The position numbers were made by a program, and so were the translations under genes. The notes under the pieces are model-generated. The model had not been told where the DNA came from and searched no databases. It saw only the letters and a list, made by a program, of their open reading frames with translations. This document shows positions 25,320-63,566 of a stretch of DNA of 64,000 nucleotides, one piece after another (the first letter of the stretch is position 1; the number at the start of each line of letters is the position of its first letter). The stretch lies in the NCBI RefSeq assembly GCF_037042905.1, contig NC_087246.1, forward strand, positions 35,650,001 through 35,714,000. Reading direction: 5' to 3'. This DNA comes from Lytechinus pictus (Eukaryota).

Positions 25320-25384
25320 CCTCCTCCTTTTCTTTTCTCCTCAACCTTTTCCTCCTCCTCATCATCATCATCATCACCTTCATC

Positions 25385-25416
<32 letters not shown>

Positions 25417-25700: not shown

Positions 25701-25894
25701 TAAGCACGTTCGTATCACCTAATCACCATATTCATCAATACCCTTTTTTACGAATAAGATGAAGTCCGAGTGATCTTAGTCCCAATGTGAATTTCTATCT
25801 ATGAAATATATGGGATATTTCTTAATATTTATCTATGAACGATGTGGTACACGTAAACTTGGTTACCGTTTCTTATTATGCTTTTATGTTGCAG

Positions 25895-34515: not shown

Positions 34516-34601
34516 TTATACTCCACCGCCCGGTGGGCCTGGAGGTGTGTTTGGTCTAGGTGTGTTTGACGGTCCAGAAGGTGGCAGGGCTTGACGTATT
34601 C
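34516..34601 (-). CDS. Unassigned secreted 6-Cys protein, paralog A, last exon (Pro-rich tail)
   Basis: acccag|GA; in phase 1 reads RIRQALPPSGPSNTPRPNTPPGPPGGGV-TAA; homologous to the last exons of B, C and D. Confidence 0.8.
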
Positions 34602-36498: not shown

Positions 36499-36780
36499 GT
36501 TCGCAAAGGTCAACAGTTCGTCCAAGATTGCATATATGCTCAAAAGCGGCGCATGGGTCACGTAATTGGATGACGTCGGTGCCGCTTGAGGAGCACAATC
36601 TCATGTCCCTCGCCATCCTGAACAGTGTTAGCATGTATCGATCACGGCTCCAGTCCCTATCCTTCTCATAGACTTCCTTTAGGACTTTCCAGTTGCAGAA
36701 ACCATATCCCTCATCTATCTTCTCGTAGTTATAATAGGGGCAAATCCGCTTTAGACGGCCCATGGGATTGTACATCGGCC
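36499..36780 (-). CDS. Paralog A, six-cysteine domain exon
   Basis: tttcag|GG ... C|gtaagt, 282 nt, phase 1/1; GPMYNPMGRLKRICPYYNYEKIDEGYGFCNWKVLKEVYEKDRDW...LC...DPCAAFEHICNLGRTVDLCE. Confidence 0.85.
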
Positions 36781-37477
36781 CTGAAAGTTTACAATAAGAA
36801 ATTATGAACATCAGTTGCAACGAGTAATTCTAGAATCAAACGGTTTAAAAATACAATGTCCATAATCTCCCTATCGTAAAAGTTAATGAAAATGTAAAAA
36901 AGAATAACTAATGGTCCATAAAGACGAGGCTAATTTGAATTGACCGCGTTTAGGGGATATGGATTGCCTTATTCTGATCTCGAATGATTAAAATGAGACC
37001 CTGCCAGAGGATTTCCTGTTAACATTGGACAAAAACTGAGCAAGATGATCGACAATTGCCTCTTTCTCTCTTAATTTCTTTTATATATTTTTCTCTTCTC
37101 CCTGTTCATTTTCGTTTTCTTTCTCTCTCCTTTTAAATACCCTTCCCTTTCTTTCCATTCCCCCTTTCCCTTCTCCTTTTTTTTATTGTGGCGGGGGAGG
37201 GGGGAGGCCCTTCGACCCCAATTTACCTTCACCTGTGTCTTATCACAGTCTTATAAACTTGACATCTGTTTAATACAAAACTTACTTATCTGTATCAATG
37301 CGGTTTCCCGTTGCAATTGTCAAAATAAGATTGTTATGCGTTATCTTATTTCATTTTGGTGATTCGGAACAATAACGCATTGTTCGGAGCATCTGTCACG
37401 AATGCGTGATCACATGAAATTATATAATGTATAGGTGTGAGTCAAGAGGGGTGTTGATGGGGACAGGATAGACTTGC

Positions 37478-37586
37478 CTGGACCATAACCGCCGTATCTA
37501 CCTCCGTATCCTCCGTATATGCCATAAAATCCGTATACTTGCGAAAAGCTGATCACAATAAAGAGACACGAGGTCAAAGTCTTCAT
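37478..37586 (-). CDS. Paralog A, signal peptide plus Gly/Tyr-rich exon (ATG in this exon); protein 158 aa
   Basis: tatcag|AAC ATG; MKTLTSCLFIVISFSQVYGFYGIYGGYGGRYGGYGP; donor G|gcaagt (GC-AG intron), phase 1. Confidence 0.8.
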
Positions 37587-38412
37587 GTTCTGATATAGGA
37601 AAAAGAGAAATAGTTTACCTGTATAAATTCGTTTTACAGCTCAATATTCATCTTATTTCTATTTTTCGGAAACAAGCCCAAATTATTATTTAATGTAATT
37701 ATTTGCTCAATGGGATTTACTTATAGTTTACATTTTAAAGAAACATATAAATCTCAAATATGGCAAATGTTTTGACAATTGGCATATCTAATAACATTCA
37801 GGTAAGATCTTGCTTGCATATAGCAGTGATAAATCTGTTCTGTTTTTTTTTTGTTAAAGAGAATAGAAACGTTGTTGAGAGGGTTATGTTAAAATAGTGA
37901 AATATAAGACTGACACGTAATTGATATAATAGTAACATAACTTCCTTGTATTATGGCTATTCTCCATTACAGCCACATAAATTTGAGTATAACCAATTAT
38001 TTTACCCTACCCTATTACTGCAAAGTATAGGTGTTGGTGAACACACGATTCGGCAGGCATGCTATAAAGGACTTTTCAACCCTGTTCTTTAGTATAGAGT
38101 TCTCCCTCCACGACACAAAACGGAGAACGTAGACAAATGTACTGTCGAATGCCCTTCATGCAATGAACAACCAAGAAGTCTTTGTCGAATATTGGTGAAT
38201 CAAAAGAGTAGTTTCGTCCCACACTCTGGATAATCGACATGTCTTGCATTTTTTTGTCAACTCCGAAACTTACTACGAAACTGTTTTTCCGGATTATTAA
38301 CTTTCAACAAAGACTTATCGGCTGTCCTTTGTCATTTGGTATTTTTAATAATTCTCTGTGTTCTTATATCCGTCGTGCGTAGCGATTCGAAACTGCCTAG
38401 TATGATCTTACA

Positions 38413-38703
38413 CCGGGAGAGCGTTTTAGGAAAGGACTTTGTTTTCCAACAGGTCCCATTTTATCCGATCGTTAACATAGTAATATTGCTTCTCAGCCAA
38501 TCAAAATCTAGGAAAGTTATCACATCAGGGGCCCGTTTCATAAAGAGTAACAACTGTTGTAACTTTGCCATTATGGCAACTACCATGGCAACCTTGATTT
38601 TGATTGGCTGCTGAGCCCTGTTACCATGGTAATTGCCATAATTGCAAAGTTACAACAGTTGGAAGTCCTTTATGAAACAGGCTCCAGACAAGGCTCCCCT
38701 AGT
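38413..38703. mobile_element. Nested MITEs of the GGG.CCGTTTCATAAA-terminus family (other members 40416-40543, 41471-41622, 46707-46883, 50614-50795)
   Basis: Inner element GGGGCCCGTTTCATAAAG ... CTTTATGAAACAGGCTCC (~38527-38687) sits inside an outer GGGAGAGCGTTTT ... GGCTCCCC element. Similar termini at the other listed copies. Confidence 0.65.
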
Positions 38704-39035
38704 TGGAAAGTGGCAAATATAACTGAACGTCTCGACTAAGAACGTTGGTGAAAGGCTGTGATTCGAGTGGTTCAAATAAGAATCCTCATTACTCAAAGCC
38801 TAAAGGGCAAGTATAGCCCTACAAAACTGTTTTTTTTTTTTTTTTATAAACAGAGGAAAGTCAAACAAGTATAATGCTGAAAATTCATCTTAAACGAGAG
38901 ATAATATACTATTTGAAATAACGTTATAGTTTTGGCCGGTCTAGAGTCAGTTTCTGGATGTGTCTGCGGCATTATGCTTGTGCACTGTAAAAGGCCAATA
39001 AAGCAAAGGAAAGGCTTGTAAACCACCAGACTTAC

Positions 39036-39175
39036 CGCTGCAGTGACTGTACCAAGATGTAGATTCGCTACGAATTCAATTATTAAAAATAGCTTTCCAG
39101 TTCAAAACCTTAAGACGTTAATTCAACTATTACCCAGAGTCGAATGGTGATCCCCACCGATCAATGGCATTTATA
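39036..39175 (-). promoter_or_regulatory. Paralog A core promoter and non-coding first exon
   Basis: GGTATAAAT (TATA at 39175) with TCACCATT about 30 nt downstream. Exon ends GTC ACT GCA GCG|gtaagt, in the position of the coding micro-exon of B, C and D. Confidence 0.6.
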
Positions 39176-40799
39176 CCAGTATACCATTCCACAAGGTGCG
39201 AAATATTATCCATTGGGCCTGTATTTGAGAAAGCCTCTCCACTTACTACTACGCCTGCTAGCCGTGCTTGATCTGAACATTTCGGCTAACATTACTCCTA
39301 ATATCTAACCCACGCCAGACTTCATGAACTATTGACCGTTAAAGAAACGAAAACAAAAATGACATAAAATGCGATCCATATATCGTAATGGGGGATATAT
39401 TTCTTTGTAAATCGGATTTTTATTAGAAAAATAGAAGGGATATCATTTAAGAAGACATATAGGAGTACACGGGGAGTACATTGACAGAATGACCAAAGAA
39501 CATCGGACCACGACTTTAACCACTTTCTGTTGCTGTAAGTTCGTGATTCCTTTCGACCAGGGACATCTGACGTTTATCTTTATGGACATACGACATGATG
39601 GTGATATTGAATCATCTTTAACATATGGTCACACAAGAATATAGATTTAAACCTAAGTTTGAAGAAAAAATTGTACATTTCATGAATTATTGCACATATA
39701 GCTTTAATCAATTTAAACTATATAAAGCTTTGTATGGACATATTGGACAATAAGCTATACTATGATGTTGCTATCTAATCATGTTCTTATAAAAATGGTC
39801 GCACAATGATATAAATTAAAGTTTAAAGCATGTCTTTTGTTTTGATAAATTCACCCCAAAAGTGCAAGTCATTATTCCAATTCGTTCCTAGAATATAATA
39901 ATACATGTTTCTAAAACTTCCCAACGATGCAATGAAAATATCTTTGCAGCACCAACCCCGCGAATGTCGGGAAGAGTGAGTGCCACCGTGTCTGAAAACA
40001 TTGCGAGGTTCCCAGACAAGGTGGTCAGCATTTTTTTGGACTCCCAAATAGCAACCACTACACAGACGCTTTCTAGAACGTAGAACATCTCTTGAAAATA
40101 GCCCTTCGTGACAAAGAAGTCTTTGTCGAAAATCGGTGAATCAAACAGCAGTGTCATTCGTGACTATAGTCTCTGGACAAACGACATATTTTACGACAAT
40201 CAGCTGTCCCGATTTACCAATTTTTGACAAAGTAGTATTAGCAGATCATCGTAATTTGACGGGCATTTTAAATATATTTACTATGTTGCAGAATCCTTCC
40301 CCGTTTTAATTGCGAAAACCCGCATGACGTCACAGCGACCGTAGTTTATCTGAGACGTAGCAGATACGAATCCTTTGGCGAGATATGGACTTAAAGTATG
40401 TCAAACAGCCTTTCTGGGGAGCGTTTCATTAAAAAGTTATCAGGTCTGACAACTTTCCTTGATTGTGATTGGCCGAGAGGCAGTGTTACCATAGTAACTG
40501 TCGGATAAAACAGTACTTGTCCTTTCATAAAACGCTCCCCTGGTCTCCAAGTGGACTCCGCAACGTATCAGAGATGTATCTGAGACTTTGCAAGGACATT
40601 GCAGATTCGCTAAGACATCTCAGCAATCAGGGATGTAAATAGTCTCCGCGATGTCTATGCGTAAATAATGGAGACGTCTCGGAGCCCAGATTCCTCTTAA
40701 GGGTCTGTCTCACCAAAGGAGACGTCTCTACAACATCCCAGAGACAATCGCTGACATGTTTCAAACGTAAAAAAAAAATCTTCTTTCTAAACAAGGAAA

Positions 40800-40907
40800 A
40801 CCATAACCGCCGTATCTACCTCCGTATCCTCCGTATATGCCATAAAATCCATATACTTGCGAAAAGCTGATCACAATAAAAAGACACGAGGTCAAAGTCT
40901 TCATATT
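40800..40907 (-). pseudogene. Orphan duplicate of paralog A signal/Gly-Tyr exon (homology with upstream intron extends to ~41065)
   Basis: cttcag|AAT ATG; MKTLTSCLFIVISFSQVYGFYGIYGGYGGRYGGYG is identical at protein level to A. The GCAAGT donor is missing and no dedicated downstream exons were found. Confidence 0.75.
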
Positions 40908-41815
40908 CTGAAGAAGAAAAAAGAAGAAGAATAGTTTACTTAAATTCGTTCTACAGCGCAATAATCATCTTATTTTTGTCTATTTTTCGGAAACAGGCCC
41001 AAATGATTATTTGGTATAACTATTTGCTAAATGGGATTTATTTGCAATTTACACTTATATATTTACACGTCGCTAGAGACAAGGTGGTAAGTAATTTGCA
41101 CTGCAGTCGCGGGGACGATGCTGCAAATTCTCCGAGTAGTCGCTATGCCTCATCGGAGTTTTTTCGTAGTTAAAGCTAAGTCCCAAAAATGTTTTTGAGA
41201 CATCACAGCGACTACTTGGAGACTTTGTAGCGATATCCCCGTTTCCGTCGGGCAAATCGCTTGTCAGCTTGTTTCGAGACGTCTCCGAGATGTCGAAGAG
41301 ACATGCATGCCTTTGTTTTGAACGACAAAACCATTTTTAAAGTTGGAGACTGAAGTACCTGAGATGTCGCAGAGGTGATCGTCGCGCGTGATCCTTTCCG
41401 GCAAAGCGTCATCGAATAGAGTACTGATGATGGTCACTGCTCGTGATGTCACTTAATCTTTGGAGAGGATCAGGGGACCGTTTCATGAAAGTTGTAAGCA
41501 CTGACAAGTTGTCTTTCTCCGACAGTTACCATAGTAACAGTCAGAGCCAGTGCCTTTCAGCCAATCAAAACCAAGGATTTCACTTAAATTGTCAGCACTG
41601 ACAACTTTCATGAAACACCCACTAGATTGTACAGCATCATCGAATAATACTGGAGCCTTACACTCACAAAGGCCGGGAACGACCAACACATCATCTTTTT
41701 TTTAATCATCCAACGCTTGATTATTTCCATTAACTCGAAGTGACTTGGAGAGAGTGTAATACTTTGGTATCGAGGTATCCTTGAGATTTAATGTGCTAAT
41801 TAAGATAATTATAGC

Positions 41816-41939
41816 CATGGGCGGAAATCTCTCCTTAAAGGTAGGGGGGACACAATTGAGTTTTCCGTGTTTATGTTCTACAGAATTACTAACTCAAACA
41901 CACACACATACATATGTATATATATATATATAACCAAAG

Positions 41940-41978
<39 letters not shown>

Positions 41979-44009
41979 TTATAGCCATTTTTCGAAGAGG
42001 GTATATTCCTAACTAAAGACGAAAGGCCTCAATAAATAATGCGAGCGCGAAGCGCGAGCCCAAATATGTTGATATTTCATAAATTGTGACCTGGAAATTG
42101 AACATTCTGAATATTTGTTGTGATCATGAACTAAATTCGAACCTACCTAAACCATTAATGCGAGCGCGAAGCGCGAGCTGAAAGTTGTTGGTTTTCCAAC
42201 CTAAAAACTAGACATTCGTAACACTTTTTCAAATCATAAACAGGATAGGAATCTAATAAAATAATGCTAGATCGAAGCGCTAGCTGAAGGTTTTCGATTT
42301 TCCAACCCATAAACTGGACATTCGTAACATGTTTTCAAATCATGAACAGGATAGGAATTTAACTAAATAATAGATGCGAGCGCGAACTGAAAATTGTTGA
42401 TTTTCCAACCTAAATACTGGACATTCATAGCACTTTAAAAAGAATATGAACAGAATATGAATCTAAACAATTAATGTGAGCGCGAAGCGGGAGCTGGAAG
42501 TTTTTGGATTTTCCAACCTAAATACTAAACATTCTTAGTACTTAAAAAAAAGTATGAACAGGATAGGAATCTAAACAATTAATGCGAGCACGAAGTAAGA
42601 GGTGAAAGTTTGTATTCTCCAACCTAATAACTGGACAATCGTCACACTTTTTCATATCATGAACATGATAAGAATTGTACTAAACAATATTAGATTCGAG
42701 CCCGAAGTGTGTGCTGAAGATATGTCATTTCCGGCCTACAAATTTGTATTATTAGCATATTTTAAAATCAATGACAGGGTAGCTATCTAACACAATTTTA
42801 ATTTGTGTGAGCGCGAAGCGTATCCTGTTTTTTTTTCCGACCAAAAAAAGTCATCTTCTTTTCACCTTATAGCAATAAACGGGATAGTATCTGACTTAAC
42901 CATATTACTGATGCGAGCGTGAAGCAAAAAATGATTTTTTTTATATTCAGATCTGAAAACTGGATCTTTCAAGCAATTTTGAAATAAAGAACAAGCAGTT
43001 TATCTCAATAAGCAATGCGAGCGCAAAGCGCGAGCTAATTTTTTTTTAGATTTTAACCTACAAATTATGAAAAAGATGGATATCTTCCTAAATAAATGAT
43101 TTGATTTTATATATTTCGATCTAAAAAGTGAAAAAAAATTACCACGTTTTGAAATAAAGAGATGGCTGTGTATTGATGCAAAGCGCGAGCAAATTCTTTA
43201 TTTTTATACTATGACCTGAAAGTTTTCTTTTTTTCCACTTATTCCCCTCCCCTTCCATCATTTAATTTTCTTCCTCGTCCTATCTTCTTATTTTTTCTCC
43301 TCACCTTCCTATTTTGCACCGCCAATAGGGGGCGGACCGCCGCTTCGCCCCCTTGATCTACCTATGATGACCCTCCCGCGGCAGGAATTTTGTGTAAAAA
43401 TGGAATATAAAAGTCTCGTTAATAGAGTATTCAAAAACAAATTTTGGGGGATTAGACATAGTTAAAATTCACTGCGAAGGATTATTCATAACTGATGAAA
43501 ACTATTCTTTTTACTGAGTACGCGAACAATGAAAATATTATTATATTCCAAGTAAATTTGGAATAAAGGGAAAATGAATTGGTTAAACAAAGATATGTTT
43601 TTACGGGTTATGGAACATTATCGTCTACCATCTATGCACTAAATTTACTTATAAGCGTCCAGAGGCGATTTTCTTTTTTCGTCATTTTTATTAGTTATGA
43701 AATTGACAATGGCCATCGATGTCATCAATGTCATCACTCTTTGGCTGGCATATAGGGCTAGATGCGAGTACGAGAATAGTCGGGCCGGTATGCCTTTTGT
43801 TTTCCTATCCAAGTTCTTGACAAAAACTATCTGTTTACATATATTTCGAAATTCGAGGATACATGTGTATAATTTCGATTTTGAATTATATATTTTTTTC
43901 CATAATAAAAGACCACAAATAGTAGGGGGGACATTTGATATTATGTCCCCCCCTTTCCAAAATGGTAGGGGGACGCGTCCCCCCTGTCCCCCTGGGATTT
44001 CCGCCCATG
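41816..44009. mobile_element. Non-autonomous hAT-type element (~2.2 kb) with internal ~100-120-bp tandem array
   Basis: Perfect 14-bp TIR CATGGGCGGAAATC / GATTTCCGCCCATG and perfect 8-bp TSD ATTATAGC (41808-41815, 44010-44017). Units with GCGAGCGCGAAGCGCGAGC repeat from ~42040 to ~43200. Confidence 0.85.
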
Positions 44010-45861
44010 ATTATAGCGTTTGAATGTCTACTACCAATTTGACTTAAAGACTGTCTATAACCCCTTTCCATGCCTACCATACATTCTGCGATACGAGTGC
44101 GACTATTTTCATTCGTAATAGTTCCAAGAGATTGTTTTGGCTGAAGAGATAAGCTATTAAAATCTATGTACGTTTATTCGATTGATACTATTGTTTCTAA
44201 AAAGTAATATACCGCTTTTATGTCATCTAGAGCATGATGTGCTGTGCCCTCTGCACGAAACATGATCTTTGCGTTGACGACACACACATGGCATTAAAAC
44301 GCACACCCACACACACTGGTATTGACAAGACTCTTGACGCTGTCCCTATCTAGCTCATGCTCTCATTCTTTCTCCCTTTTTTACCGTTCAAACTTACACG
44401 AATATTGTATAGATTTTCAAACACATAGTGAGTTACACTGTTTGGTAACTATATAAGCTTCAAGTTTAAAATTACAAGTTAGATGGGAAAAAAATAATCA
44501 TAAAGATACATGAATATTTGAAATCTTCAATTTCTGCATGTAAATATACAGATGATGTGATGTAAATGCGCTATATCTTCATGTGCAATTATTCACAAAC
44601 AATCTAAATGTTAATATTTACTTCTGTATCAAAAGGAAATCACGAACAAAGTGTCATTTAGCGTAAAACACCTTAGTCAATTTCAAAATCGGAAAATTTA
44701 AACTCAATTTGAAATCACAATTCAGCCATCAATATTGTATGCTTGTGTGAAAATCAATATTCTAAGAACTCTCGCTTTTTAAATCGTAGTGCTTCTCCCG
44801 GTTTTTTTTTCTTCAGAGGTCATAGGCAGGGCCCGCTGGGAGAACAGTTTTCGGAACTGAAGTGGCTACCCTGGTGCCGTTATTATTATTATTATTATTA
44901 TTGTTATTATTTTAGACATACTCGGAATGAGTACGTTGCAAATTTCAGATTTTGATACTTGCTTGTGAAGTCGTTATAAAAGTCTATTTAGTACTCGGTC
45001 AAATCTACTTAACATTTGACCGTCTAAAGATGCTTCTGGATGTTTTCTGTCAAAATGCTCACACGTTTTTTGTTGTAACGAGTTTAAATTTGAGATGAAA
45101 GCATTTTATAATATAAGAGTTGAAGTGAATAATTATGTGAACATTCTCATTTTTTTCATATTGATTGTCTGGCAGGGCATCACGGGAATGAAAATGAGAC
45201 TTGCACATGATATCCATAGACTGATTTCCCGTTTCCTAAGACAAATTTCTCCAAAGATTGTGTTACTCACGACTTCATTCTTAGTCATCATGGTGTGTTT
45301 TAGGGGGATTAAGTCCACTTTGAAAACCTATTGAGTGACGATGTATGAAACGATGGAATGAGCATTGATTTCACCATGGCTTATCCAACTCTACCACCCC
45401 CTCTCCAATTTGATTTCCTAATTCATATGTCGAGTCACCAATCTCTTTCCCCCCGTTTTTCATTAAAGGGATACATTAAAAGGGTTTTTCATTAAAGCGC
45501 GAAGCGCGCTCGATTGCCAGATATACTGACCTAATAGAGACATTTTAAGGACTGTGCAATTAAAAGGGTATGTATCTCAATGACAAAATAATGCAAGCGC
45601 GAAGGGCGAGCTGGAATTTTTTATATGCAATCACTTTAAACAGTCACTACATAAAACAATTAACTCGAAGTGCGAAGAAATATATTTGCTGTACATGTAT
45701 ATTGACTTGAAAACGGGATGTTTTAGTACAAGATTGTATATCTAATTAAACAGACAATGTAAGCACCAGGAATGATGAACACATAGACCCTAAGCAAATT
45801 ATGTTTCTAAGGTTATGAAAAAATATTTCTTATGTAATATTATATAAAATATATTATAATA

Positions 45862-46128
45862 TAGGATTTGTATAGCGTACGTATCCACCTTGCTAGGTGC
45901 TCAAGGCGCTCCTATACTACCCCGGCTTAGCTATAGTCTACCAATTCAGGTGCTCACAGCTTTTTGAGGAATTACTTCCTGCCGGTCCCCATTTACCTCA
46001 CCTTGGTTGAGTGCAGCACAATGTGGGTTAATTTCTTGCTGAAGGAAAACACGCCATAGCTTGGAGTCGAACCCACGTCCTTCAGAATGAAAGACGAGAG
46101 TCTTAACCACTAGACCACGACACCCCCA
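45862..46128 (-). mobile_element. tRNA-derived SINE
   Basis: Minus-strand head GGGGTGTCGTGGTCTAGTGG (A box) ... GGTTCGACTCC (B box); body CAACCAAGGTGAGGTAAATGGGGACCGGCAGGAAG; inserted in an (ATATA)n tract. Confidence 0.75.
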
Positions 46129-46187
46129 CAACAATATAATATGATATAATATAATATAATACAATATCATTTCTTCTCCCCACTACG

Positions 46188-46218
<31 letters not shown>

Positions 46219-47897: not shown

Positions 47898-47992
47898 TTA
47901 TATACCACGGCCACGAGGTGTTGCAGGAGGTTGTGGTCGCGGGGTGGGTGCAGGAGCAGCTGGAGGTCGTGGCCTGGCTCGGGCTCGTAGAG
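47898..47992 (-). CDS. Paralog B, last exon (Pro/Arg-rich tail)
   Basis: ctttag|CT; TLRARARPRPPAAPAPTPRPQPPATPRGRGI-TAA. Confidence 0.82.
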
Positions 47993-48598
47993 CTAAAGTA
48001 AGCAATATAATAATAAAAAAATATGAGGATTAATTCATGGCTTAAGAAGTACAAAATACCATTCAACAAACAAACAAAGCGGATTAATGAAAGAGAGTGG
48101 TAATTCCAATTCATATTTCGTCTGATACACAAATTGAAACAACGTAATTCTCGTAACCCAATTTTAACTTTGTGGTTTTGAAACCGATTTTGCAGGAAAT
48201 CCTTCTTCCTTGCGAAATGAATAACTTTTAAACTTAGAGAGTAATCGGAGAACTAATTCTCCATATCTTTCAATCCAGTTAAGCCCACCAATGGTGACCA
48301 ACAACATGCATGCACCAAAGCACATTTCACATTACATTTTGTTGTCGCCTACCACTTTGATCCATCCGATTTTTTTCTGTCCTTTGCAACCTCATTATGT
48401 CTATTCAGTATTTTAATTCACATATTTTCAGTTGTCTCCTTTGTGTATGTTTTCACATTGGACCATAATGCATGTGTTAAGTGCGTCAGTCACGTGCACA
48501 GTGAAATGCAAATCCACTTCATGTTCACTCTTAGAAGATCCATGGAAAAATTCGAGGATTATATATGGAATATATGCCCAAATATATGTAACACTCAC

Positions 48599-48895
48599 TT
48601 GAACAATAATCAACTGTTCGACCACTGCAAGCAGCATCGAAGCCCTGGCAAGGATCATGGATTGGAATTATTTGGTTCGCCTCTAGGTGACCGCCGACGA
48701 AGCACAACAGGCCGCTTCGAGATATCCCGTAGAGTTCCCGAAATGCATGTCGATCGTGGCGGCTGAAATCTTTCACCTTGTCGAATACCTCTTTCAGGAC
48801 CTTCCAATAGCACCTGCCATGCCCTTCATCCCACCTCTCTTTTTGATATATATAACAGTACTGACTGAAGCGGGCGCCTGGGTTGTGTCCTCCTC
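48599..48895 (-). CDS. Paralog B, six-cysteine domain exon
   Basis: tttcag|GA ... A|gtgagt, 297 nt, phase 1/1; GGGHNPGARFSQYCYIYQKERWDEGHGRCYWKVLKEVFDKVKDF...LC...DPCQGFDAACSGRTVDYCS. Confidence 0.85.
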
Positions 48896-50306
48896 CTGAA
48901 AATTTTAAAAGGGTAAACGGGGGTAAACATGGTAATCGAATGTTTATCACGTGATCATAGTACCAATAATGTATCAACGTTATTATGGAACTACTGCATT
49001 CAACAAAAAGTGATCGTCCACGCTCATCAGGTGTAAGAAAATTTCAAATGAGTGAAAGTCGGTCGGTATCTAAGTCTTTTCCACTTAGGCCTAGATCAAA
49101 TCACTTCTAGGTTGATTGAAAGACAACTGAAGTCAAGCTTACGATATTCAGGGATAAATTTAAAGTGTATTTACGGGTATTGTTACTTATCTGCCGAATG
49201 GTGTGCTCTTTGGGGGATCCGAAAACTAATTGTCAAAGCATTATCAATATGTTAATAAAAATTCACGATTTTTTTAATTCACCTACAAAATAAAATTGCG
49301 CAAAGCGGTACAGACCTACATTTTTTTTGTTTTATCTCGAAATGTTGTGTTATTAGGTTTTCACTTAATTTGTCAAATTTAGAATAAGAACATTGCATTA
49401 GACTTATGAGAGAAATAAATATAACCCATGTGAGATGTGTGTGCAATCATTAGGCCTACGGTTTATGACTTTCATGCGATCGAATTTCTTGACATTGATC
49501 GAATAGTGCATTTTACGTGGCTCTCAATGAAAGTAAAGTTAAGCAACTCACGGAATCCTAGCGCAAATGCATGGCGCAAAATTAAATGCAGTTTTAATTT
49601 AAGGTATTGAAAGTGACAAAATCTCTCTATGAAATACTGTGTTTACCCCAAAAAAAAAAAGAGGAAGGTATTTCATGGAGCTCCATAATAAATGAGATTT
49701 TAGCCAATCAGAGGCAACGATTTCAGCAGCTTATAGCAGGTGTCAGAGAAAAAAATACTACTGACAATGTTTATTCATATTATACCTGCTTACTACTTAG
49801 GCCAACTCAACTATGTCATAGTTGAATATAAACATGGATGATGAAACACAAAATATTACACAAAGTGAAGAGCAATATATATCCGAATTGTTATAAAAAT
49901 GACTTCATACTAAGAAGAAAAACCACTATAATACTAACAAAATAAACAATTGAATTCTGAAGTTGGCGTATAAGAATTGTTTATATTCGCCGGCGTGACA
50001 ACTTTCAAATGTTACAAAACTGTGTGCTATCATAAATTTCTGATTTTTTTTCCTAATTTCATTTGAAATTCCACCTTGTGGATTCACATAAAGTTTAATG
50101 GTTCGATCTTGGACCATGTTTCAGAAAATGTAGTATTTAAGTACAATTAATTGACGAGTATGCTCCTAACAAATCTTATTGCATGGTGTCCGTATCTAAT
50201 AACAGTAACTTGAAATTGAAGGTTTTTTTAATGAAACGTTGCCTTCTTTGTAAATTTGGTATAAGCTTCAGTAGGACAAGTTATTGAATGAAGAGAGACT
50301 AGTTAC

Positions 50307-50409
50307 CTCCAAACCCTCCATACATGCCATAGCCTCTGTGTCCGCCAAACCCCTGAGAAACACAGCAACCTATCATAACAGACAAGGAGACTCCAAGGAG
50401 AAGTCCTTT
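50307..50409 (-). CDS. Paralog B, signal peptide plus Gly/Tyr-rich exon
   Basis: tcacag|AAA ... G|gtaact; KGLLLGVSLSVMIGCCVSQGFGGHRGYGMYGGFG, phase 0/1. Confidence 0.8.
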
Positions 50410-51143
50410 CTGTGATGAAAAGACAAAATTGTTTTAGAATAAAAAGTTTATGATCGAGCATTTAAAAACATTCAAATCAATTTTGTTTTTTTTACAGTTG
50501 ATGCCTCCCACAAAACAAAATAATAACTAGGAATAGGGCAAGTCGTTTTATGAGGTAACTTCCTTACTTTTCTTGACAACACGAATGCCAAAGACCGACT
50601 AAACGATCTAGACCTGGTGGGTGTTTCATAAAGCTGTTCGTAAGTTAACATTTAAGAGCAACTTTAAGAACGACTGGTGAACATCTCTTACGCGCGAAGT
50701 AATCACCAATGAACATATCATTTACCACAAGAAAGGATCACCAGTCGTTCTTAAAGTCGCTCTTAACTTACGAACAGCTTTTTGAAACGGCCCTCTTGTA
50801 TACTATTTCAAATGACATCTTCCCGGACGGTTTGGGGTCTGACTCGTTTGCCCGACTGTGTAGTGTAAACTTGAACTTTTTATCTGTTCTTGATCTTACA
50901 ACAGTAGGTACAAATTTAAATCTTCGTATTCTGGTTGTTTAGCATGAAAGGCTTATGAGATAGTTTCAAAAGTCCGATAAGGTCCTTTCTTGAAAAAATA
51001 ATAATTTTGTAATGAATAACTAAGGGTAATCGAGTGAAACAGGCTCAGTATTATCATAAGTAACCGGATATCACAAATTTCTCCTTAATGGAGAATAAAA
51101 TGAAAGTGCTTGAAGCGCGTACAACAAATATCATCCCACTTAC

Positions 51144-51155
51144 CATTGTAGTCAT
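51144..51155 (-). CDS. Paralog B, 4-codon first coding exon (MTTM); protein 168 aa
   Basis: AAAATG ACT ACA ATG|gtaagt, phase 0, downstream of a TATA/Inr pair. Confidence 0.7.
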
Positions 51156-51219
51156 TTTGTAGTTTTACAAGGCTGGAAAATCAAAGAAGAAAATACTGTT
51201 GAACATTTTTCTCGAAACC

Positions 51220-51254
51220 AAGTGACATTCGCCCACATCGTATTAGTATTTATA
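51220..51254 (-). promoter_or_regulatory. Paralog B core promoter (TATA plus Inr)
   Basis: TATAAATA starts at 51254; the A of TCACTT is at 51223, 31 nt downstream. Confidence 0.65.
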
Positions 51255-53422: not shown

Positions 53423-53458
53423 TATAAGTAGAGTGAATAAGTGAGGGGTCACCACATT
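53423..53458 (+). promoter_or_regulatory. Paralog C core promoter (TATA-like plus Inr-like)
   Basis: GGTATAAGTA...GTGAGGGGTCACCACATT aligns with the paralog A promoter GGTATAAAT...GTGGGGATCACCATT. Confidence 0.55.
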
Positions 53459-53542
53459 GTTGTCGCGGTACAAGTGTACCAATCCTCTGGAGCTTTTATA
53501 ACAATACTTGCAGGATATCAGTCGATTCGAAGCAGCAACAGA

Positions 53543-53554
53543 ATGACAGCATCG
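53543..53554 (+). CDS. Paralog C, 4-codon first coding exon (MTAS); protein 160 aa
   Basis: AGAATG ACA GCA TCG|gtaagt, phase 0. Confidence 0.7.
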
Positions 53555-54877
53555 GTAAGTATTTTTTTTTCCACTCGATTGGTATTGTGTGTGTCTCATG
53601 ACTTCTCAATTGTTTAAACTCATGGCCGTACGCATCGAGGTGAGGGTAAGGACAGGGGGCAAAGGGACAGTTGCCCCCCCCCCCCCAGAGAAAATGGAAA
53701 CGTACATATACATGTACATGTATTACTGAAAATTTTCATAAAATTTAACAAATGTGTGTACGAAATCCTTCTTTTTTTTCTCAGAAAATGCAGAAGCGCC
53801 CCCATGACATGCTCGGTCGCATCGCTCCCTCTATTTAGAGCTTCTTCAAAAACTGTATGTGCCCCCCCCCCCCGATAAAAATGCGTATGGTCATGCTACA
53901 GTTTCATTAAACGATAAATCGTTTTATTTCATGTTTTCTTTAATGCATCATGATGTGATGAATTCGCTTTAACAGATTTGAACCACAATACGACACTATT
54001 TTACTATTGTATCTTTTTTTAATAAAAAGGTTTAAAACTTTGATTTCTAAAAAAATCTATTTTCCCTTGTTATTTCTGATTACTACTTTATTTATGTCTT
54101 TGCAGTGTAACCCTTGTTTCAATTATAAGTTTTTTTTAATTAAGTTTTTTCCTATTCAGTACAGTTGAATGATAATTCTAAAGAAAAAAAAAGTGCTAAT
54201 TAAGGCCATACTAATTTTGTCTTCTGAATTTCATTCACCAAGAGCAAACGCAAGAATGTATAACAGACGACCTAAGCAAAGGAAACGAGAGCTTCGGTGT
54301 TTGTTCGTTTTAATTTACATTTTGTTTATTACTGCGTTTGCTTTTCGAAAATTAATTATCTTGTAAACAAATAGCTGGAAACAATGAAAATACTGAATGG
54401 ATTTCATGTGTGGCAGTAACAAACTAATATATATATTTATTCCAAATAAAATATATTTTTGATAATAAAAAAAAAATAGATATGCATTTGATATAAAGTT
54501 TATAAATAGATTATGTAATATGTTTCTGTGCCTTATTATTCCCTATATACCATGGAGAGTGGTAAAGCAGGATGTACTAGTATTCATCAACTATTTGTTA
54601 GAAAAGACTTTTAAGAAGCATTTGTCACAAAAATAAGGGAAAACAAATTCAGGTGATCTTTTAGATCACACGTAAACACCCGATCTTAATGGGATGATTT
54701 ACAAATTTACAGTGGTCATTTTGGCTTGGATTATTTTATTGTTCTGTTTAAATCTTGTATCACCAATTTAGAATTTCTCTCATTTTGTAATACTGCAATT
54801 TAAACAATATTGAACTTTTATTTTTGTACTTTCAGTAAAGTATACTGGAAGCAATATAGCAGAGCCCGCCATCTGAT

Positions 54878-55130
54878 TAAATAAAAAAAATTAAAACATA
54901 GTAATTTATACAATAACAGAAGAGGATTAATACGAAATAATGACAAGCCAAAAGAAATACGCTGTACGGACTGTTGTCAGAAGTACTATTATGTTGAATG
55001 ATAAATAAATAAAAAAATTAAAACATAGTAATTTATACAATAACAGAAGAGGATTAATACGAAATAATGACAAGCCAAAAGAAATACGCTGTACGGACTG
55101 TTGTCAGAAGTACTATTATGTTGAATGATA
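54878..55130. repeat. Near-perfect 127-bp tandem duplication in paralog C intron 1
   Basis: TTAAAACATAGTAATTTATACAATAACAGAAGAGG...ATGTTGAATGATA occurs twice with period 127. Confidence 0.9.
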
Positions 55131-55164
55131 TAATATTATTACTACTCGTATGGTATCATTTCAG

Positions 55165-55261
55165 AAGCTATCGCTCCTTGCTCTCTGTCTATCTCTTTTG
55201 GTTTCTGCATCTGTTTCACAAAATTGGGACACATTTGGTGAATATGGATTCGGTGGATTTG
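55165..55261 (+). CDS. Paralog C, signal peptide plus Gly/aromatic-rich exon
   Basis: tttcag|AAG ... G|gtgagt; KLSLLALCLSLLVSASVSQNWDTFGEYGFGGF, phase 0/1. Confidence 0.82.
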
Positions 55262-56020
55262 GTGAGTACATCATTACATGATATTGACTGAACTTGAGGG
55301 ATATACCACTTATATTTCCCAAAATATTATCATGATCGCCCGAGTCGTGACGAGGGCAATGTGTGTAATGTAAGTGAGGGGATCATTTATGGTTTCTCCA
55401 GTAAATTAATGCAAGGAAGTGTTATCTATTCTTCATTACCTATAGTTCCATTTCAGAATACAGTCTTTGTCTGTAGTTTTGTCATATCCAATAAATATTT
55501 TTAGGAGAGTTGTTTATGCAATTAGGTGCTTAGAGGAATATACTTGCATTAGTCTGGGATTGTATTTTCGAAACAGTTATTGAGACAGTCAGTGTTACAT
55601 TCTCGAACCATTTCAGTAAAAGTGCCAATGTATAAATGTATAAGTACCAACAACTCTGTATTTTTCTAGGCTGATGATTTGGTGTATTTACTTATAACAT
55701 GTTTTCGTCATTGTTTTTAATCCTTCAAATCAATATTGTGTCTTCCGATAAGATAAAGGCAACGCCATGTTTCCTCCTTCTCCTCCACATAACCTTCATT
55801 GATCATTGCAAGAAAACATTGGACTGCCAACTGTAAAAAAATAAAATATTATACTCCACATACTGAGAGTATGCCTTAGCTGCATGCCTGGTTGCCCCCA
55901 CCCCCTTCCCCCTCAAAAATGGGGAAAACATAATAATGAATTGCCAATCAAAATGATCAAAGTGGGTTTGTGTTTTGCTTCGTATTAAACGCCGCACATC
56001 GGATTATTACCATTTCAATC

Positions 56021-56062
<42 letters not shown>

Positions 56063-56146
56063 GGGGGGGGGGGGTTCGTTATATATAATTATATTGTTTA
56101 CGGATGATTGAATGTATGTTTTTAATGCTTCTCTCTAATTTTTTAG

Positions 56147-56431
56147 GACCAGAACTAGCCCCCGGTGCTCGCATGGCTAATTACTGTAATCTGTTTAACA
56201 AGGAGAAGCATGACCAAGGAAAGGGATGCAATGGGCAGGTCTTAAAGAAAGTTTATGATAAAGACAAGGATATTAACCAAAATGAATCTATGTTAAGGAT
56301 CTTCAGACTGGCGAGGAGAGGGGCATTTTGTTACAAGGAAGGAGCTCATATTGTGACTATAAGATCACCCTGTCATGCAATGGAAATTTCTTGTCGTCCA
56401 TATTCCCGTAGTTTGGTCGATAACTGTTGGA
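56147..56431 (+). CDS. Paralog C, six-cysteine domain exon
   Basis: ttttag|GA ... A|gtgagt, 285 nt, phase 1/1; GPELAPGARMANYCNLFNKEKHDQGKGCNGQVLKKVYDKDKDI...ARRGAFCY...SPCHAMEISCR...VDNCW. Confidence 0.85.
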
Positions 56432-57606
56432 GTGAGTACATTTTTATGTTTTTTGTTTTATTTCTGCACTCTTAACAATGTTGGGCAATACTGTCCACAC
56501 GACAATCGGTTAAAACTTTATCAAATTCTGGGTGGTCTGAAACCAATTACGTGTGCTTTGGATGAACACTGCACAGCATCGGTCGAAAGCTACCCAGAGG
56601 TGGATACATTTTTTAAACAAATTGTTACGTAGATAGTATGTTGCCCAACATTTTAAGAGTGAAATGGGTTTCCGCATAATCGAGATTATTTGATGGGTGC
56701 TGTGTGTGATAGTCATTTTGCGATTTGGAAATCGTTTTTCTTTCTCTTTCTTTCCCCACGACGTACACCGCGTAATATCCGTTAGATACACACACAACGA
56801 GTTGTGTCCTTATCTTATGACAGTTTTTACGCATTATCAGTAGGTTAGAAACTCCGATTTTTATCCGGGGCCTGTGAGGGAACAGAATAGGATACCCGTA
56901 TAGCATATCCAATCATTTTTCATAAACATTTACCACGTTTACTGACAATCGGAAGGGAACCGTCTGGGAACGGTCCGATGCCCGCTCGTTGGCCGTACGA
57001 TGTCCTTTCCAGCACCGATATGGCTTTCTTCGTCCTAACGAATATTAATCTGACCCCGAATGTATAGTGTCAAATTGCCTGCCTGAAATATATTTTGTGT
57101 GAGATGTAGATATCACATGTGATTTCTAATTATTTCTATTTATCAAAGTAAAATAGAGGGAAATGATTCATTGCCACACAGCGTGTCTAATTACAATGAC
57201 TAATGTGGTGAAAAGGCATGACATGTACATATATGACGTATAGTTTTGTTGCCTTATGATAGCAATTTATTTAATACTTTGCAACCCCCCCCCCCCCCCA
57301 AGAACAAAACAAAAAAAATGAGAAAAACGATGTAATTTTATACTCTTCATATGCATTACCTTTCGTAAGGGAAGGTGCAAATTTACACGCTTTGAAGCGA
57401 ATGCATGCACCATAAAAGGTGCAAAGCTGCACTATTATTTATCACTATTTTCGTTTAATTCCGGGTTTCTATTTAAGGTAAAATATTAAACCTCTTTGTA
57501 CGATTAAGACACAGCCACAGCTGTTATCAAATCTAATATGCGTGTGCTATAATATACAAGGCATGACTCTAAACATTTTTCTGTCTTTGTTATTTTTCCG
57601 TAACAG

Positions 57607-57695
57607 AAGTGACTCGTCCACCAACTCGTCGACCAGACACTCCTGGCCCTAATCCACCTCAGGCCCCCGAAACCCCACGTGGACGAGGCATCTAA
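57607..57695 (+). CDS. Paralog C, last exon (Pro-rich tail)
   Basis: taacag|AA; KVTRPPTRRPDTPGPNPPQAPETPRGRGI-TAA. Confidence 0.82.
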
Positions 57696-59493
57696 CCATC
57701 CATCGGAAAAGGAGCGTTGGACACAAAGACTCGGTTTGATGATAGAGAGTGGCGACAGAGTTCGATGTGGCTTTCAAGTAACATCGAATTCCTGTCATGG
57801 CTTACTTTACTACTCAGCTGAACATTATTACAAGAATCGGGAGGACAATTTGTGTTCAGCAAATACTAGCAGAGCTTCGAAGTTCATCGGTAATGCTCCA
57901 GTCCGATCGACCAACAAAACTCTCACAAATTAGGCTCCAAGCCGACCGATAGCATGCCATTTGAAATAAGGTGGTAGATTTGATTGGCATTGAGTCGGTC
58001 TCGTTGGTGTGACTGAAACAGATCTGAGGCGGTTCTGTATCTTTACCATGGCGGCCCATATGCAAGGTGATCCAGGGATCGAATCAAGATTACCACCTGG
58101 GTATTTTGGATGCACTTTTACCGTCGAGAGGGATGTTTGGAAAGGAATGCTACCGTCCCGATGACTCAAGAACGCCGTTTATACCACTCGCCTTTCTCTA
58201 GTTAGCATTTTTACTCCCCCTTGTTGAAGTAATATAGTTTTGGCTCAGATAGGCTATGATTAACATATAGGTTTCATGCTGAGTTTAAAGCCGGTCAGAC
58301 AGTAGGCTACGTTTAGATGTTGTTGTAAAGAAAGAAACCTTTTACAGTATTTGTTTTTAATGTGAATATTTTGAAGAAAAAAATAAAAGTAACAATCATA
58401 TAATACTGGTCATGTGACATTAATTATATAAGTTATATTCTTCTTAGTCGTAAAGATATACTTTTCTTTTTGACTTCGAGTTCATAATCTCACGAGATCC
58501 TGCATTAGCTTAGACCTAACAGGCATCTATCAACTTTATTCGAGAAGAAATGATAGAATGGGCGATGGAGCGATTTTAGACAACGAACAAATGAAAAAGG
58601 AAAGAATAAAGAGGAAAAATTATAATGTGATACAGATTAAGAGAGAAAGAAAACAAGAGAGAGAGAGAGAGAAGGAAAGAGAGAACATCTTAGAAGGGAT
58701 GGAGAACATAGTTTCTTAATAAAACTGCTGCGTCTTTCAGCAAACTTTGGCGTTTCACATCTGATTTCCCACATTCTCATCATTTTGTCTATTCTTGGAA
58801 AGAAGGGAGGAAAAATACTCTGTGGAAGATTACAGCCAAAAATACGTGGCAGAAACTTTTGATGAAATTGCTTACGGATGGAGGAAGCAGAAAAAAAAAT
58901 GCAAGAACACTCGGCGCTTCGGGCAGGTTGACTCATGAAGACGGACAGTCAACCTGTCCGAAACGTCGAGTCAATCTAGGACTTACCACATGGGGCACGG
59001 CAAACCCGTTCCACAAGTAACCAGGATGTACATACAACTACTTTGTGAAATTGAGCAAAACTTTGGAATATTATACCTTTCTTATTTTGATGAAAATTTT
59101 CACTTCATATGCGTGTTTAATTTTTCGCTTTTTATCAGAATCAGCTTTTTTTTAAATGGGGTGGACGGGACCTTACACATTTATATTTTGTGATTAAAAA
59201 AAAAAACATGTAAGCAAAATAAAACGGTCCACCAAATTGTACCAATTTGGCTTTTCCGTTTATCCCCTGTGACAAAAGGGCACATGATAAAATGTTCAAC
59301 GGCATAGATGCCGTGGCCGGGTATCGAACCGCAAGCTTTATTGTATCATGCACTTGAGGCCACTCTGCTAAGGCACCTCATGATAAGTTACACGGAAAAA
59401 AATCAAGACAAATACATACGATGACTCACACTTCACACACATTTACTAGTATGTAATTTGATGATCGGGGACTCACCATTAATCTACAAAGTG

Positions 59494-59658
59494 CACTGTA
59501 AAAATGAAGTGCTAATTTAGCACTTACGGAGCTTGTATAGTGACTGCACTACGAGTGTTGATTTTCTAGTTCAAATTCAAACTAGAAAATCAGCACTCGT
59601 AGTGCAGTCACTATACAAGCACTGTAAGTGCTAAATTAGCACTTTATTTTTTACAGTA
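59494..59658. mobile_element. Near-perfect palindromic MITE with CACTGTAAAAA terminus
   Basis: Arms AAGTGCTAATTTAGCACTTAC..GCTTGTATAGTGACTGCACTACGAGTG.TGATTTTCTAGTT and their reverse complement surround a very short spacer. Confidence 0.75.
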
Positions 59659-61722
59659 TGGGGACTTGTTGCATACACTAAAAAAAAAAAAAAAATCGAA
59701 TTTTATCCAAGAAACGGACTCAGTTCCAAAAGTAACGAGAGAATAGTTCGCTGACGCTCCCTACCCCAAATACACTCAACCTGAATTCAATTGGCACTAC
59801 GGGAACTTTTTACAAATCACATGTTTACTATGAAGCGGTTTATGAGGAGTTGATTGGTTTGGTAATCTGGATTGGGAACGTCTCCGGTTGTAAGTCCCCG
59901 GTAAAATGTAAGAATATCCTCAGAATTAGGTCATTACAAACTCACACACGCCACGCGCCCTCACACACATACACCCACCCACCCTCCCACACGCACGTAC
60001 ACACGAACCAAACCCTCACATATACACCCCCACCCATACACCAGTTTATCCACAAATTCCACGTTTCTTTTTGTGAGTCGATTATGTACTTATGGTATGT
60101 AATTTTAAAATGGAATAAGCATTAATTGCCGAATAACCCCAAACTATATTTCCTTGTCCTAGGAATGTAAAGAGGCAATATGTTAACAATATCAATTAAA
60201 AATGTTCTGAAAGGACATGAGAAGGAATTAAGCTCAATTCTTACATTATTTGCTTTAGCCAATGACGTATTTTGATGGACGAAAGATGGTTTTCTGTTAC
60301 TCTATTTTGTATCGCATGGCAAACCAATTCCTATCTAACTCGTGATAAAAATCAAGAGTATTACTCACAGACCTATTGTATAACTCTTTCTACCGTTTCC
60401 TCGATCCTTCTCCCTCAATTTTTTTCTATATATTTTCTCATGTTACAGCCGTGTTCCCCTCTGTACCATTTGTATTCACAATTTCCACTTCTTTACATTT
60501 TCAAATATCTTGTACTCACACAAACAAATCACAAAGTTCCCATCCGTTTTTAGATCTCTATTGCTGACAAGCAAATATACATTTACGTCCACATTTTATC
60601 ATCCATGCACGGACTTAGGTGTCTCGTGATGTACAGTATAAAAAAAAATTATTTTTTTTACAGAGTTACGCTGTAGAACAAATTACCTAATACTACATAC
60701 ATGTATATTTATTTTTCAACACACAGAAACAAATATTCAATAAATATGAACAATTCATCACGTGAACGGTATACTCGGCAATAATTATTATGTATATTTT
60801 TTTACATCATCATTTTATATAAGATCATGTCAATGCTTAACGCAATGTTATCACTACTTTAAAATACAATTCACTTATTGAATCTTTCCGTTTAAAAAAT
60901 ACCATATGCACAATGTAAAAGCAAAATATATATGGTCTCACTACTACTGAAGGTTTCCATGGTGAAGAAGAAGAGTGTAGTGGGTTTCACGGTACACCGT
61001 GTACCACTTGCCCACGAAAGATGCATGGTGTACCGTGAAACCCTCTACACTCATTATCTCACTGATTTGGGTATTTCTTCAGATCGCTGGGTGATGGTGC
61101 ATGAAACATATAATAGTAGAGGGTTTTCGCTTCCACGCTTCCATTCAACATGTTCAAGAACAACGTGAAAGTATTGAAAAAGCCCGTCAAATGACGATGA
61201 ACAGCTAGGGTCTTTGTCTAAAATTCTTGAATGGAACCGGAACAGCAATTGCATCGTAAGTTTCGGAGCTGCCAAAAAAAATGCAAGCATGTCATCTTTC
61301 CAGGTTCCAAGTTTCAACGAGCCTCGGCAAAGACTGCATTGTCATGAAGGGGATTTGACAATATATAGATTCTCTACTTTCCAGAAAGAGTCTGCTTAGC
61401 TGTTGCGAAAAATCCTTAACGAAAACCTGGTCAATCCATTGTCAGCTAAACGTCATACGGGATTTTTCGCAACAGCTAAGCAGACACTTTCTGGATAATA
61501 AACCGACCGATTCTCTTGCATAATGTCAAATGACATACCATCGATCGAGTTCCAATCGGATTTATTGGTGTGCCCGTAGCATAAATCATATCACATCATT
61601 GATGTGATTTCATTGAAGGAATCCAACCTCTGTAAAGTGAACTTTGGTGGCATGCCGGATGGCATGACAATCCAAATGACGACTGTAGAGAAGTTTTGGT
61701 AAACGAAATCGCTGTAAAATGT

Positions 61723-61823
61723 TTACATTCCCCAGCCATACCAGCCCGGCGGGCCTGGAACAGGAGGATTTGGTCGATTGGTCACTGCAGGACCGGCTGG
61801 TGGAGGATTCTGCTGAGCTGCCC
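61723..61823 (-). CDS. Paralog D, last exon (Pro-rich tail)
   Basis: ttttag|GG; RAAQQNPPPAGPAVTNRPNPPVPGPPGWYGWGM-TAA. Confidence 0.8.
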
Positions 61824-62099
61824 CTAAAATGAGATAGAAAATAGTAAGAGAATATTGTGAAGCTTAAGTTAGAACAGTCAAATCATAAAGGAGTCATGGT
61901 TATGCGTATAATCGAAAAAGGAGCACTCTTTGTCTAACCTTTTGTAAAATGTTGCCAATGCAAAAACTTCATCACAATTTGAAAATAGAAATCTACAGAA
62001 TAGTCCGTTGTCTCTCTTGCTAAGATTCAAGGTGTTAAGTGAGCCTAATAAAGCACTTGGATCAACTTAAGTGTTTGAAAGAAAATATCGTACTTATAC

Positions 62100-62396
62100 T
62101 CCAGCAGCTATCAATCCTTGGTGGACTCTGTTGGATAAAAGGGGGGCCGCGACAGGCAAGTTGCATAGCATCACAGGCTCCTCTTATATTCATCACTTGT
62201 GGTCCGTTGGCATAGCAGAGCACTCCCCGTCTTGCCCGTCTAAAGAGCTGCCTCATGAACCCATCGTGGTAGATATCCTTATCTTTGTCGTAGACTTCCT
62301 CGAGAACATCCCTGTTGCAGCGACCCTCGTCGAACATTTCCGAACCAAACAAGCCACAGTACTCGGACATTCGACCGTGTGGATTATAGCCTGGGC
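62100..62396 (-). CDS. Paralog D, six-cysteine domain exon
   Basis: atacag|GC ... A|gtataa, 297 nt, phase 1/1; GPGYNPHGRMSEYCGLFGSEMFDEGRCNRDVLEEVYDKDKDI...ARRGVLCY...GACDAMQLACR...IDSCW. Confidence 0.83.
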
Positions 62397-63475: not shown

Positions 63476-63566
63476 CCCAATAGCCATCATACATGCCGTA
63501 CATTCCGTATACTTGAGAGAACGAGGTACATATTATCACAGATAAACAGAGAGATATTACTGTATT
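63476..63566 (-). CDS. Paralog D, signal peptide plus Gly/Tyr-rich exon
   Basis: tttcag|AAT ... G|gcaagt (GC donor); NTVISLCLSVIICTSFSQVYGMYGMYDGYW, phase 0/1. Confidence 0.8.

Follow-up and report, generated by a model that had tools for sequence, protein, structure and literature searches.

The question raised by this locus is why four look-alike exons, each encoding the same pattern of six cysteines, should lie close together on a sea-urchin chromosome, and what the encoded domain could do. The exons are found in a stretch of 64,000 nucleotides (nt) of Lytechinus pictus (contig NC_087246.1), which is called the window here and supplies all coordinates (a run of N at 17086-17441 is masked). 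The original prediction, made from the letters alone, suggested that they might carry a mobile extracellular domain distributed by exon shuffling. Our analysis instead makes it highly probable, as regards anatomy and evolutionary origin, that the window holds four adjacent, intact and separately transcribed genes, the first of a tandem cluster, which belong to a sea-urchin gene family.

By tblastn of each copy against the whole window, exactly four copies of the six-Cys domain were detected (E 1e-11 to 1e-26 between copies), and a fifth was not found in the window, everything else having E >= 0.4. The six-frame list of open reading frames (ORFs) likewise showed four domain ORFs carrying the predicted motif. 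The copies are 34-46% identical in pairwise amino-acid comparison, and the domain, of about 95 residues, is complete in each of the four exons of 282-303 nt:

36499-36780, minus strand: domain exon of gene 1, 282 nt, phase 1/1, acceptor AG, donor GTAAGT
48599-48895, minus strand: domain exon of gene 2, 297 nt, phase 1/1, donor GTGAGT
56147-56431, plus strand: domain exon of gene 3, 285 nt, phase 1/1, donor GTGAGT
62094-62396, minus strand: domain exon of gene 4, 303 nt, phase 1/1, donor GTACGA

On the acceptor side, all four exons have a polypyrimidine-AG and a Gly codon split after its first base. On the donor side the cut is again after the first base of a codon, giving phase 1/1, and the lengths (282, 297, 285 and 303 nt) are all divisible by three. 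The placement of the module on a single symmetric exon was therefore confirmed by the splice sites, as well as by the exact reconstruction of the RefSeq models given below. The predicted end of the gene 4 exon was corrected to 62094, which is 6 nt further 3' than the position homologous to the paralog donors, and phase 1 holds with this correction. Alignment of the four translations gave 19 invariant columns, consisting of the six Cys and P, R, E, D, G, VL, V, K, D, R, G and D, and so reproduced the predicted consensus with its six invariant Cys. These Cys are kept in 23 family members, across which they are the sole invariant columns, with a spacing of about C-x14-C-x33-C-x13-C-x6-C-x8-C. As six invariant Cys occur in a secreted protein, the domain presumably contains three disulfides.

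The four look-alike exons are thus real, but they belong to four different L. pictus genes lying on both strands (LOC135153296, LOC129272338, LOC129272329 and LOC129272318). A protein search returned copy 3 as part of the 160-amino-acid (aa) 'uncharacterized protein LOC129272329 [Lytechinus pictus]'. Splicing of the coding sequence (CDS) exons matched the RefSeq models at full length for three of the four genes, and for gene 4 at all but four codons:

34516..37586, minus strand: gene 1, LOC135153296, 158 aa, spliced translation identical to RefSeq model P0018
37586-37478, 36780-36499 and 34601-34516, minus strand: CDS exons of gene 1, encoding the signal peptide and Gly/Tyr linker (GC donor), the domain, and the Pro-rich tail with stop, respectively
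47898..51155, minus strand: gene 2, LOC129272338, 168 aa, spliced translation identical to RefSeq model P0003
51155-51144 and 50409-50307, minus strand: first two CDS exons of gene 2, the ATG with three codons (located by pattern search), and the signal peptide with Gly-rich linker
48895-48599 and 47992-47898, minus strand: 3' CDS exons of gene 2, the domain, and the Pro-rich tail (end PRGRGI) with stop
53543..57695, plus strand: gene 3, LOC129272329, 160 aa, spliced translation identical to RefSeq model P0001
53543-53554, 55165-55261, 56147-56431 and 57607-57695, plus strand: CDS exons of gene 3, the third encoding the domain and the fourth the tail (end PRGRGI) with stop
61723..63566, minus strand: gene 4, LOC129272318, 168 aa, spliced translation equal to residues 5-168 of RefSeq model P0040
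63566-63476 and 62396-62094, minus strand: CDS exons of gene 4 in the window, the signal peptide with Gly/Tyr linker (GC donor), and the domain
61823-61723, minus strand: last CDS exon of gene 4, the tail (end GWYGWGM) with stop

The first four codons of gene 4 (MIAT) gave no match in the window by pattern search, and presumably lie past its end. All four genes have a common plan, in which a signal-peptide exon that includes a short Gly/Tyr/Phe-rich stretch and ends in phase 1 is followed by the domain exon and then by an exon for a tail of about 27-32 residues that is rich in Pro and has GRGI, GGGV or GWGM at its end. The signal peptides were assigned only from inspection by eye and from hydropathy. 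Genes 2 and 3 and, according to the protein model, gene 4 start with a tiny coding exon of four codons; the ATG of gene 1 is within the signal-peptide exon. The only Cys in the mature proteins are the six of the domain.

Two features of the gene structures can be added. The donors after the signal-peptide exons of gene 1 (37476-37477) and gene 4 (63474-63475), both on the minus strand, are GC rather than GT (a G followed by GCAAGT), and in gene 1 this GC donor is also kept in L. variegatus. Genes 2 and 3 are arranged head-to-head, with their ATGs at 51155 (minus strand) and 53543 (plus strand), 2.4 kb apart, and may share a bidirectional control region. The divergent spacer between them is 83-86% identical, in blocks, to that of L. 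variegatus.

Comparison with L. variegatus showed whether these genes are maintained. The corresponding locus in that species is syntenic: all four genes recur there, and neither their order nor their orientation has changed. Between the two species the domain exons share 94-98% identity with zero indels, while the surrounding introns and spacers align in gapped blocks of 71-90% identity. The ratios of non-synonymous to synonymous substitution (dN/dS, Nei-Gojobori) for the four domain exons were 0.05, 0.06, 0.05 and 0.08, and the pooled value was 0.062 (dS 0.187, dN 0.012; 38.5 synonymous against 10.5 non-synonymous differences). Constraint on the tails is weaker, with dN/dS from 0 to 0.41 over few sites. 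The paralogs are old, as their 34-46% identity indicates, and each is under strong purifying selection. From the synteny and the low dN/dS it follows that these are four working genes with conserved, non-redundant roles, and neither fast-evolving effectors nor debris.

The possibility that the copies are decaying exon relics or repeat debris was considered because such remnants do exist nearby. One is a domain copy about 3.7 kb past the end of the window (G000:C2:35717740-35718021; L007:1501-1782, minus strand), which has an in-frame TAG in its domain exon; being otherwise near-identical to the next gene of the cluster (L005), it is taken as a young pseudogene copy. The other is a relic of the gene 1 signal-peptide exon:

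40800-40904 (wider, 40802-41056), minus strand: relic of the gene 1 signal-peptide exon, about 260 nt with upstream flank, 87% identical

It lies about 3.3 kb upstream of the real gene 1 exon and is without a usable splice donor. No counterpart was found at the same place in L. variegatus, so it looks like a partial duplication specific to L. pictus. The four window copies, on the other hand, are open, are spliced correctly in the RefSeq models, are syntenic in a second species and are under strong purifying selection. For these four genes the debris explanation is refuted, and the chance we would leave to it is negligible.

The RefSeq model of the gene 1 ortholog in L. variegatus (P0002; L016 19211-23288) has an N-terminus (…EDFDLVSFYCDQLFA) that corresponds to the signal-peptide exon translated in a wrong frame. 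The model is probably mis-annotated here, and the correct frame yields the L. pictus signal peptide.

The four window genes are part of a larger set. A six-frame search of the assembly with a profile from the four exons found at least 14 copies in the genome, 12 of them within about 120 kb of this chromosome (the window holding the first four) and 2 on another contig. The copies are 4-26 kb apart, those examined have their own signal-peptide exons, and a phase-1 acceptor and a phase-1 donor just past the last Cys are kept in all 14. With the same four-sequence profile, 1.84 billion representative proteins of any length were searched exhaustively by HMMER, which returned 16 matches. In fifteen of these, proteins 86-214 aa long, a single stretch was matched. 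The sixteenth, a weak match of 32 residues (E 2e-4) to a 698-aa repeat protein, is probably spurious and was rejected.

These searches bear directly on the suggested mobile domain. The attraction of that idea is that a symmetric phase 1/1 exon, of the class classically tied to exon shuffling, encodes a complete folded domain, which could have been inserted into varied genes and architectures. The phase was confirmed, but no other architecture was seen: all the real profile matches are proteins of 86-232 aa and have the domain in single copy within a layout of signal peptide, domain and tail. The domain was not found beside unrelated domains or as tandem repeats among the 1.84 billion representatives, and no member carries any Pfam domain. 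Each of the 14 genomic copies is a gene of its own, and 12 sit in a single tandem cluster. In addition, a phase-1 intron after the signal-peptide exon is common among secreted-protein genes in general, so that a whole domain on a symmetric phase 1/1 exon is not by itself proof of exon shuffling. The family grew by whole-gene tandem duplication. Because the module was never found outside one architecture and its copies arose as whole-gene duplicates, the mobile domain is unsupported, and shuffling is a very improbable origin for the four exons.

A few extra members were obtained from two word-indexed searches using family alignments. The labelled members come only from L. pictus, L. variegatus, Strongylocentrotus purpuratus and Diadema, and go by the names 'uncharacterized' or 'Secreted protein'; the one exception is 'collagen alpha-1(IX) chain-like', a label given automatically because of a Pro/Gly-rich tail. 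The window genes and 19 others have the features of an echinoid six-Cys family, which are a signal peptide, one domain and a low-complexity C-terminal tail. From the sequences collected so far, its range would appear to be Echinoidea and its products small proteins of about 130-230 aa.

In the maximum-likelihood tree the family divides into clades A and B, with deep subfamilies that contain cross-genus orthologs. Clade A comprises the window genes and two more genes of the cluster, and its mature proteins are basic, with an isoelectric point (pI) of 8.9-9.9. The proteins of clade B run from neutral to very acidic, their domain pI falling as low as 4.1 and their net charge to -21, and the subfamilies of this clade have orthologs in Lytechinus, Strongylocentrotus and Diadema. 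Across the whole family the domain pI ranges from 4.1 to 9.2 and the net charge from +6 to -21. It is the tail exon that varies within the family, and the tails are Pro/Thr-rich in other subfamilies than that of the window genes. The Gly/Tyr/Phe linker is a feature of the window-gene subfamily. The subfamily on the other contig (C19) ends, at its extreme C-terminus, in a hydrophobic segment some 20 residues long with no cytoplasmic tail after it, which looks like a glycosylphosphatidylinositol (GPI)-anchor signal. In the clade A protein P0023 of L. variegatus (ortholog of the L. pictus gene at G000:C2:35747621-35747902), the tail has four PPGRxGWGM-like units, compared with one in its relatives.

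The structure of the domain was predicted from two alignments. The AlphaFold2 model of the gene 3 domain, built on the 23-sequence alignment of the whole family, had a predicted local distance difference test (pLDDT) score of 85.4 and a predicted template modelling (pTM) score of 0.74, with helices at 7-12, 15-24, 31-45 and 49-58, a hairpin at 62-66/69-73, and a helix at 76-83. A second AlphaFold model, of a clade B protein with a clade-B-only alignment, had a pLDDT of 87.5 and a pTM of 0.80 and the same order of elements; it serves as a partly independent test of the first. The domain is therefore predicted to fold compactly, as four helices followed by a beta-hairpin and a last helix. The predictions from different alignments converge on one order of secondary-structure elements, and the VL..VYDK.KD and M..LFR.AR blocks, which had been proposed as helices, are helices 3 and 4 of the model.

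The view that the domain is unnamed also holds, as a Pfam or DUF match was looked for and not found. Pfam gave nothing meaningful for the four exons (E up to 10), the 23 members (E up to 1) or full-length P0040 and P0043 (E up to 0.1), and no sequence match was found in PDB with either a single sequence or the family profile. Foldseek against PDB returned no structural relative under E 0.9, with TM about 0.3. With both models, the shape search of the ESM Atlas gave TM <= 0.46, to bacterial S4, TetR and similar domains; in the ESM Atlas feature search with three proteins, no score reached 0.9. VIA-align, which does not depend on Foldseek, was run against 48,161 chains, and its best matches had Z 4.5 and 5.5 for the two models, to a de novo designed helical protein. 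In none of these structure searches did a relative stand out from noise.

Saposin-like proteins are the only disulfide-rich secreted proteins recurring among the weak structural matches, and the domain could therefore be thought of as a very divergent saposin-like (SAPLIP/canopy) lipid-binding fold. Weak matches were seen for both models (granulysin Z 3.8/3.6, saposin D Z 3.5/3.5, NK-lysin Z 3.2, and pERp1/MZB1 Z 4.2 with 86 residues aligned). Saposins, NK-lysin/granulysin and canopy/MZB1 are also mostly helical, extracellular or luminal, and about 80-100 residues long with six Cys, so size, helical content and Cys number are alike. However, Z values of 3.2-4.2 are inside the stated noise band of the tool, level with those of TetR N-domains and a designed protein, and the Foldseek search gave no match under E 0.9. 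None of the 23 members matched SapB_1 or SapB_2 in Pfam (E up to 1), and sequence searches of PDB did not return saposin-like chains. The saposin fold is a bundle of 4-5 helices with nested disulfides; the Cys spacing here differs from the saposin pattern, and the beta-hairpin is extra. The structural matches amount at most to a lead, and on balance a saposin-like fold is distinctly unlikely.

A topical literature search found only unrelated proteins, such as tooth-matrix Ala/Pro-rich proteins and eclosion-hormone-like precursors. The echinoderm precursors of the latter type, Spnp11 and Spnp15, have six conserved Cys forming three disulfides (PMC5627052). Like the present family, they are small, secreted and from echinoderms, and have six conserved Cys with three disulfides presumed, but their genes are few per species, in contrast to the 14-gene family here. 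No eclosion hormone Pfam match was obtained for the four exons (E up to 10) or the 23 members (E up to 1). Eclosion hormone also has a shorter domain, with closer Cys spacing, which is covered by a Pfam family.

Ly6/uPAR proteins share with the family a small Cys-rich domain, the presence of secreted and GPI-anchored members (the latter apparent in our case) and an arrangement in tandem clusters. A language-model feature search with the GPI-like member returned Ly6-type clusters at a low score of 0.76-0.78. The Ly6/uPAR fold is an all-beta three-finger structure with 8-10 Cys and a C-terminal CCxxxxCN motif. Membership was rejected on three grounds: no UPAR_LY6 Pfam match was found, the models are helical with one hairpin, and there are six Cys only. 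In general form, the family resembles the lineage-specific small secreted Cys-rich families that expand by tandem duplication. Shared with these are a signal peptide, a single domain of about 100 residues that is rich in disulfides, flanks of low complexity, a phase-1 intron past the signal-peptide exon, and the occurrence of secreted members beside apparently GPI-anchored ones. The difference is that the domain here has no named family by sequence or predicted fold, and that its paralogs are old and strongly conserved rather than fast-evolving.

As to function, the folded domain would act outside the cell as a binding module, either as a soluble or surface-tethered ligand or as an adaptor. 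The paralogs would present different surface charges (net +6 to -21) on this domain, and the floppy ends could serve as spacers or tethers. We infer an extracellular binding or ligand module as the most likely role, although tentatively. This is because the proteins are secreted, nearly all constraint falls on a compact, presumably disulfide-locked domain, the 1:1 orthologs are stable, charge is diverse on one fold, and some relatives are apparently GPI-anchored.

Several points weigh against this account of the genes and their role. Binding is a function that we infer, and the Gly/Tyr-rich and Pro-rich ends would suit a structural matrix protein equally well. The restriction to sea urchins comes from one exhaustive search with a four-sequence profile together with the word-indexed searches, and very divergent relatives in other echinoderm classes could escape these. 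Transcription of the four genes rests on the RefSeq models and on purifying selection, and the inspected Logan/ENA contigs with family members were genomic and unspliced.

The proteins could alternatively be structural components of an extracellular or skeletal (calcite) matrix or of an adhesive secretion, in which the low-complexity ends do the work and the Cys domain is a cross-linking or mineral/matrix-binding knob. This would explain the Gly/Tyr/Phe-rich linkers and Pro-rich tails, the repeated units in P0023 and the very acidic members (pI 4.1), and such tails recall the Pro/Gly repeats of sea-urchin spicule-matrix proteins. Against this, the low-complexity parts extend over only 10-30 residues and are either missing from clade B or of another kind there, the strongest constraint is on the folded domain and not on the tails, and one subfamily looks GPI-anchored. 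The proteins in the sea-urchin matrix proteome study that was checked are different ones, and neither the family identifiers (LOC/XP) nor the peptides were found in the searchable literature. A matrix role is therefore a reasonable possibility, but not the one we would favour.

Another explanation is that these are antimicrobial or other immune effectors, clade A being cationic cysteine-stabilised peptides. They are small secreted proteins with amphipathic helices, mature clade A has a pI of 8.9-9.9, and the genes form a tandem multigene cluster. Effector families usually show fast turnover, however, which does not agree with dN/dS of about 0.06, strict 1:1 orthology between the Lytechinus species and cross-genus orthologs in the tree. 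Half of the family is neutral to strongly acidic, and sea-urchin peptides of the Strongylocin type are much shorter. An immune role is unlikely on this evidence.

The binding-module role could be extended further. The domain may represent a new disulfide-stabilised alpha/beta fold that defines an echinoid-specific extracellular signalling or recognition family, with secreted basic, secreted acidic and GPI-anchored members, in which neighbouring basic and acidic paralogs are perhaps paired. It would then be a ligand system invented within the lineage and not a structural or defence protein. We regard this extension as rather speculative.

The family is a candidate for a new domain family, in which proteins labelled 'uncharacterized' have a confidently predicted fold without a detectable relative and are strongly conserved, in sea urchins only as far as was seen. 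The split between Diadema and the camarodont urchins is early in echinoid phylogeny, so the presence of the family in both points to an origin early in echinoid history. As L. pictus is a genetically tractable urchin, the function is directly testable. Lineage-specific secreted Cys-rich families are common in animal genomes, and as the role proposed for the present one is tentative, its interest is moderate.

Three other open frames were observed in the window. They are:

501-935, plus strand: open frame with a Cys-rich stretch ending CCDGDLCN, and a weak, below-threshold match to Ly6/PLAUR PF16975 (E 0.004)
18718-19110, plus strand: long open frame with hydrophobic stretches and a weak claudin/PMP22-like match (E 0.04)
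24850-25722, plus strand: long open frame with repeated 'ERRLSKQSW' units, then a hydrophobic stretch and a long His run

The first probably belongs, as an exon, to a Ly6/uPAR-type gene that has no relation to the six-Cys family. The other two, which lie upstream of the cluster, may be exons of one or more membrane-protein genes.

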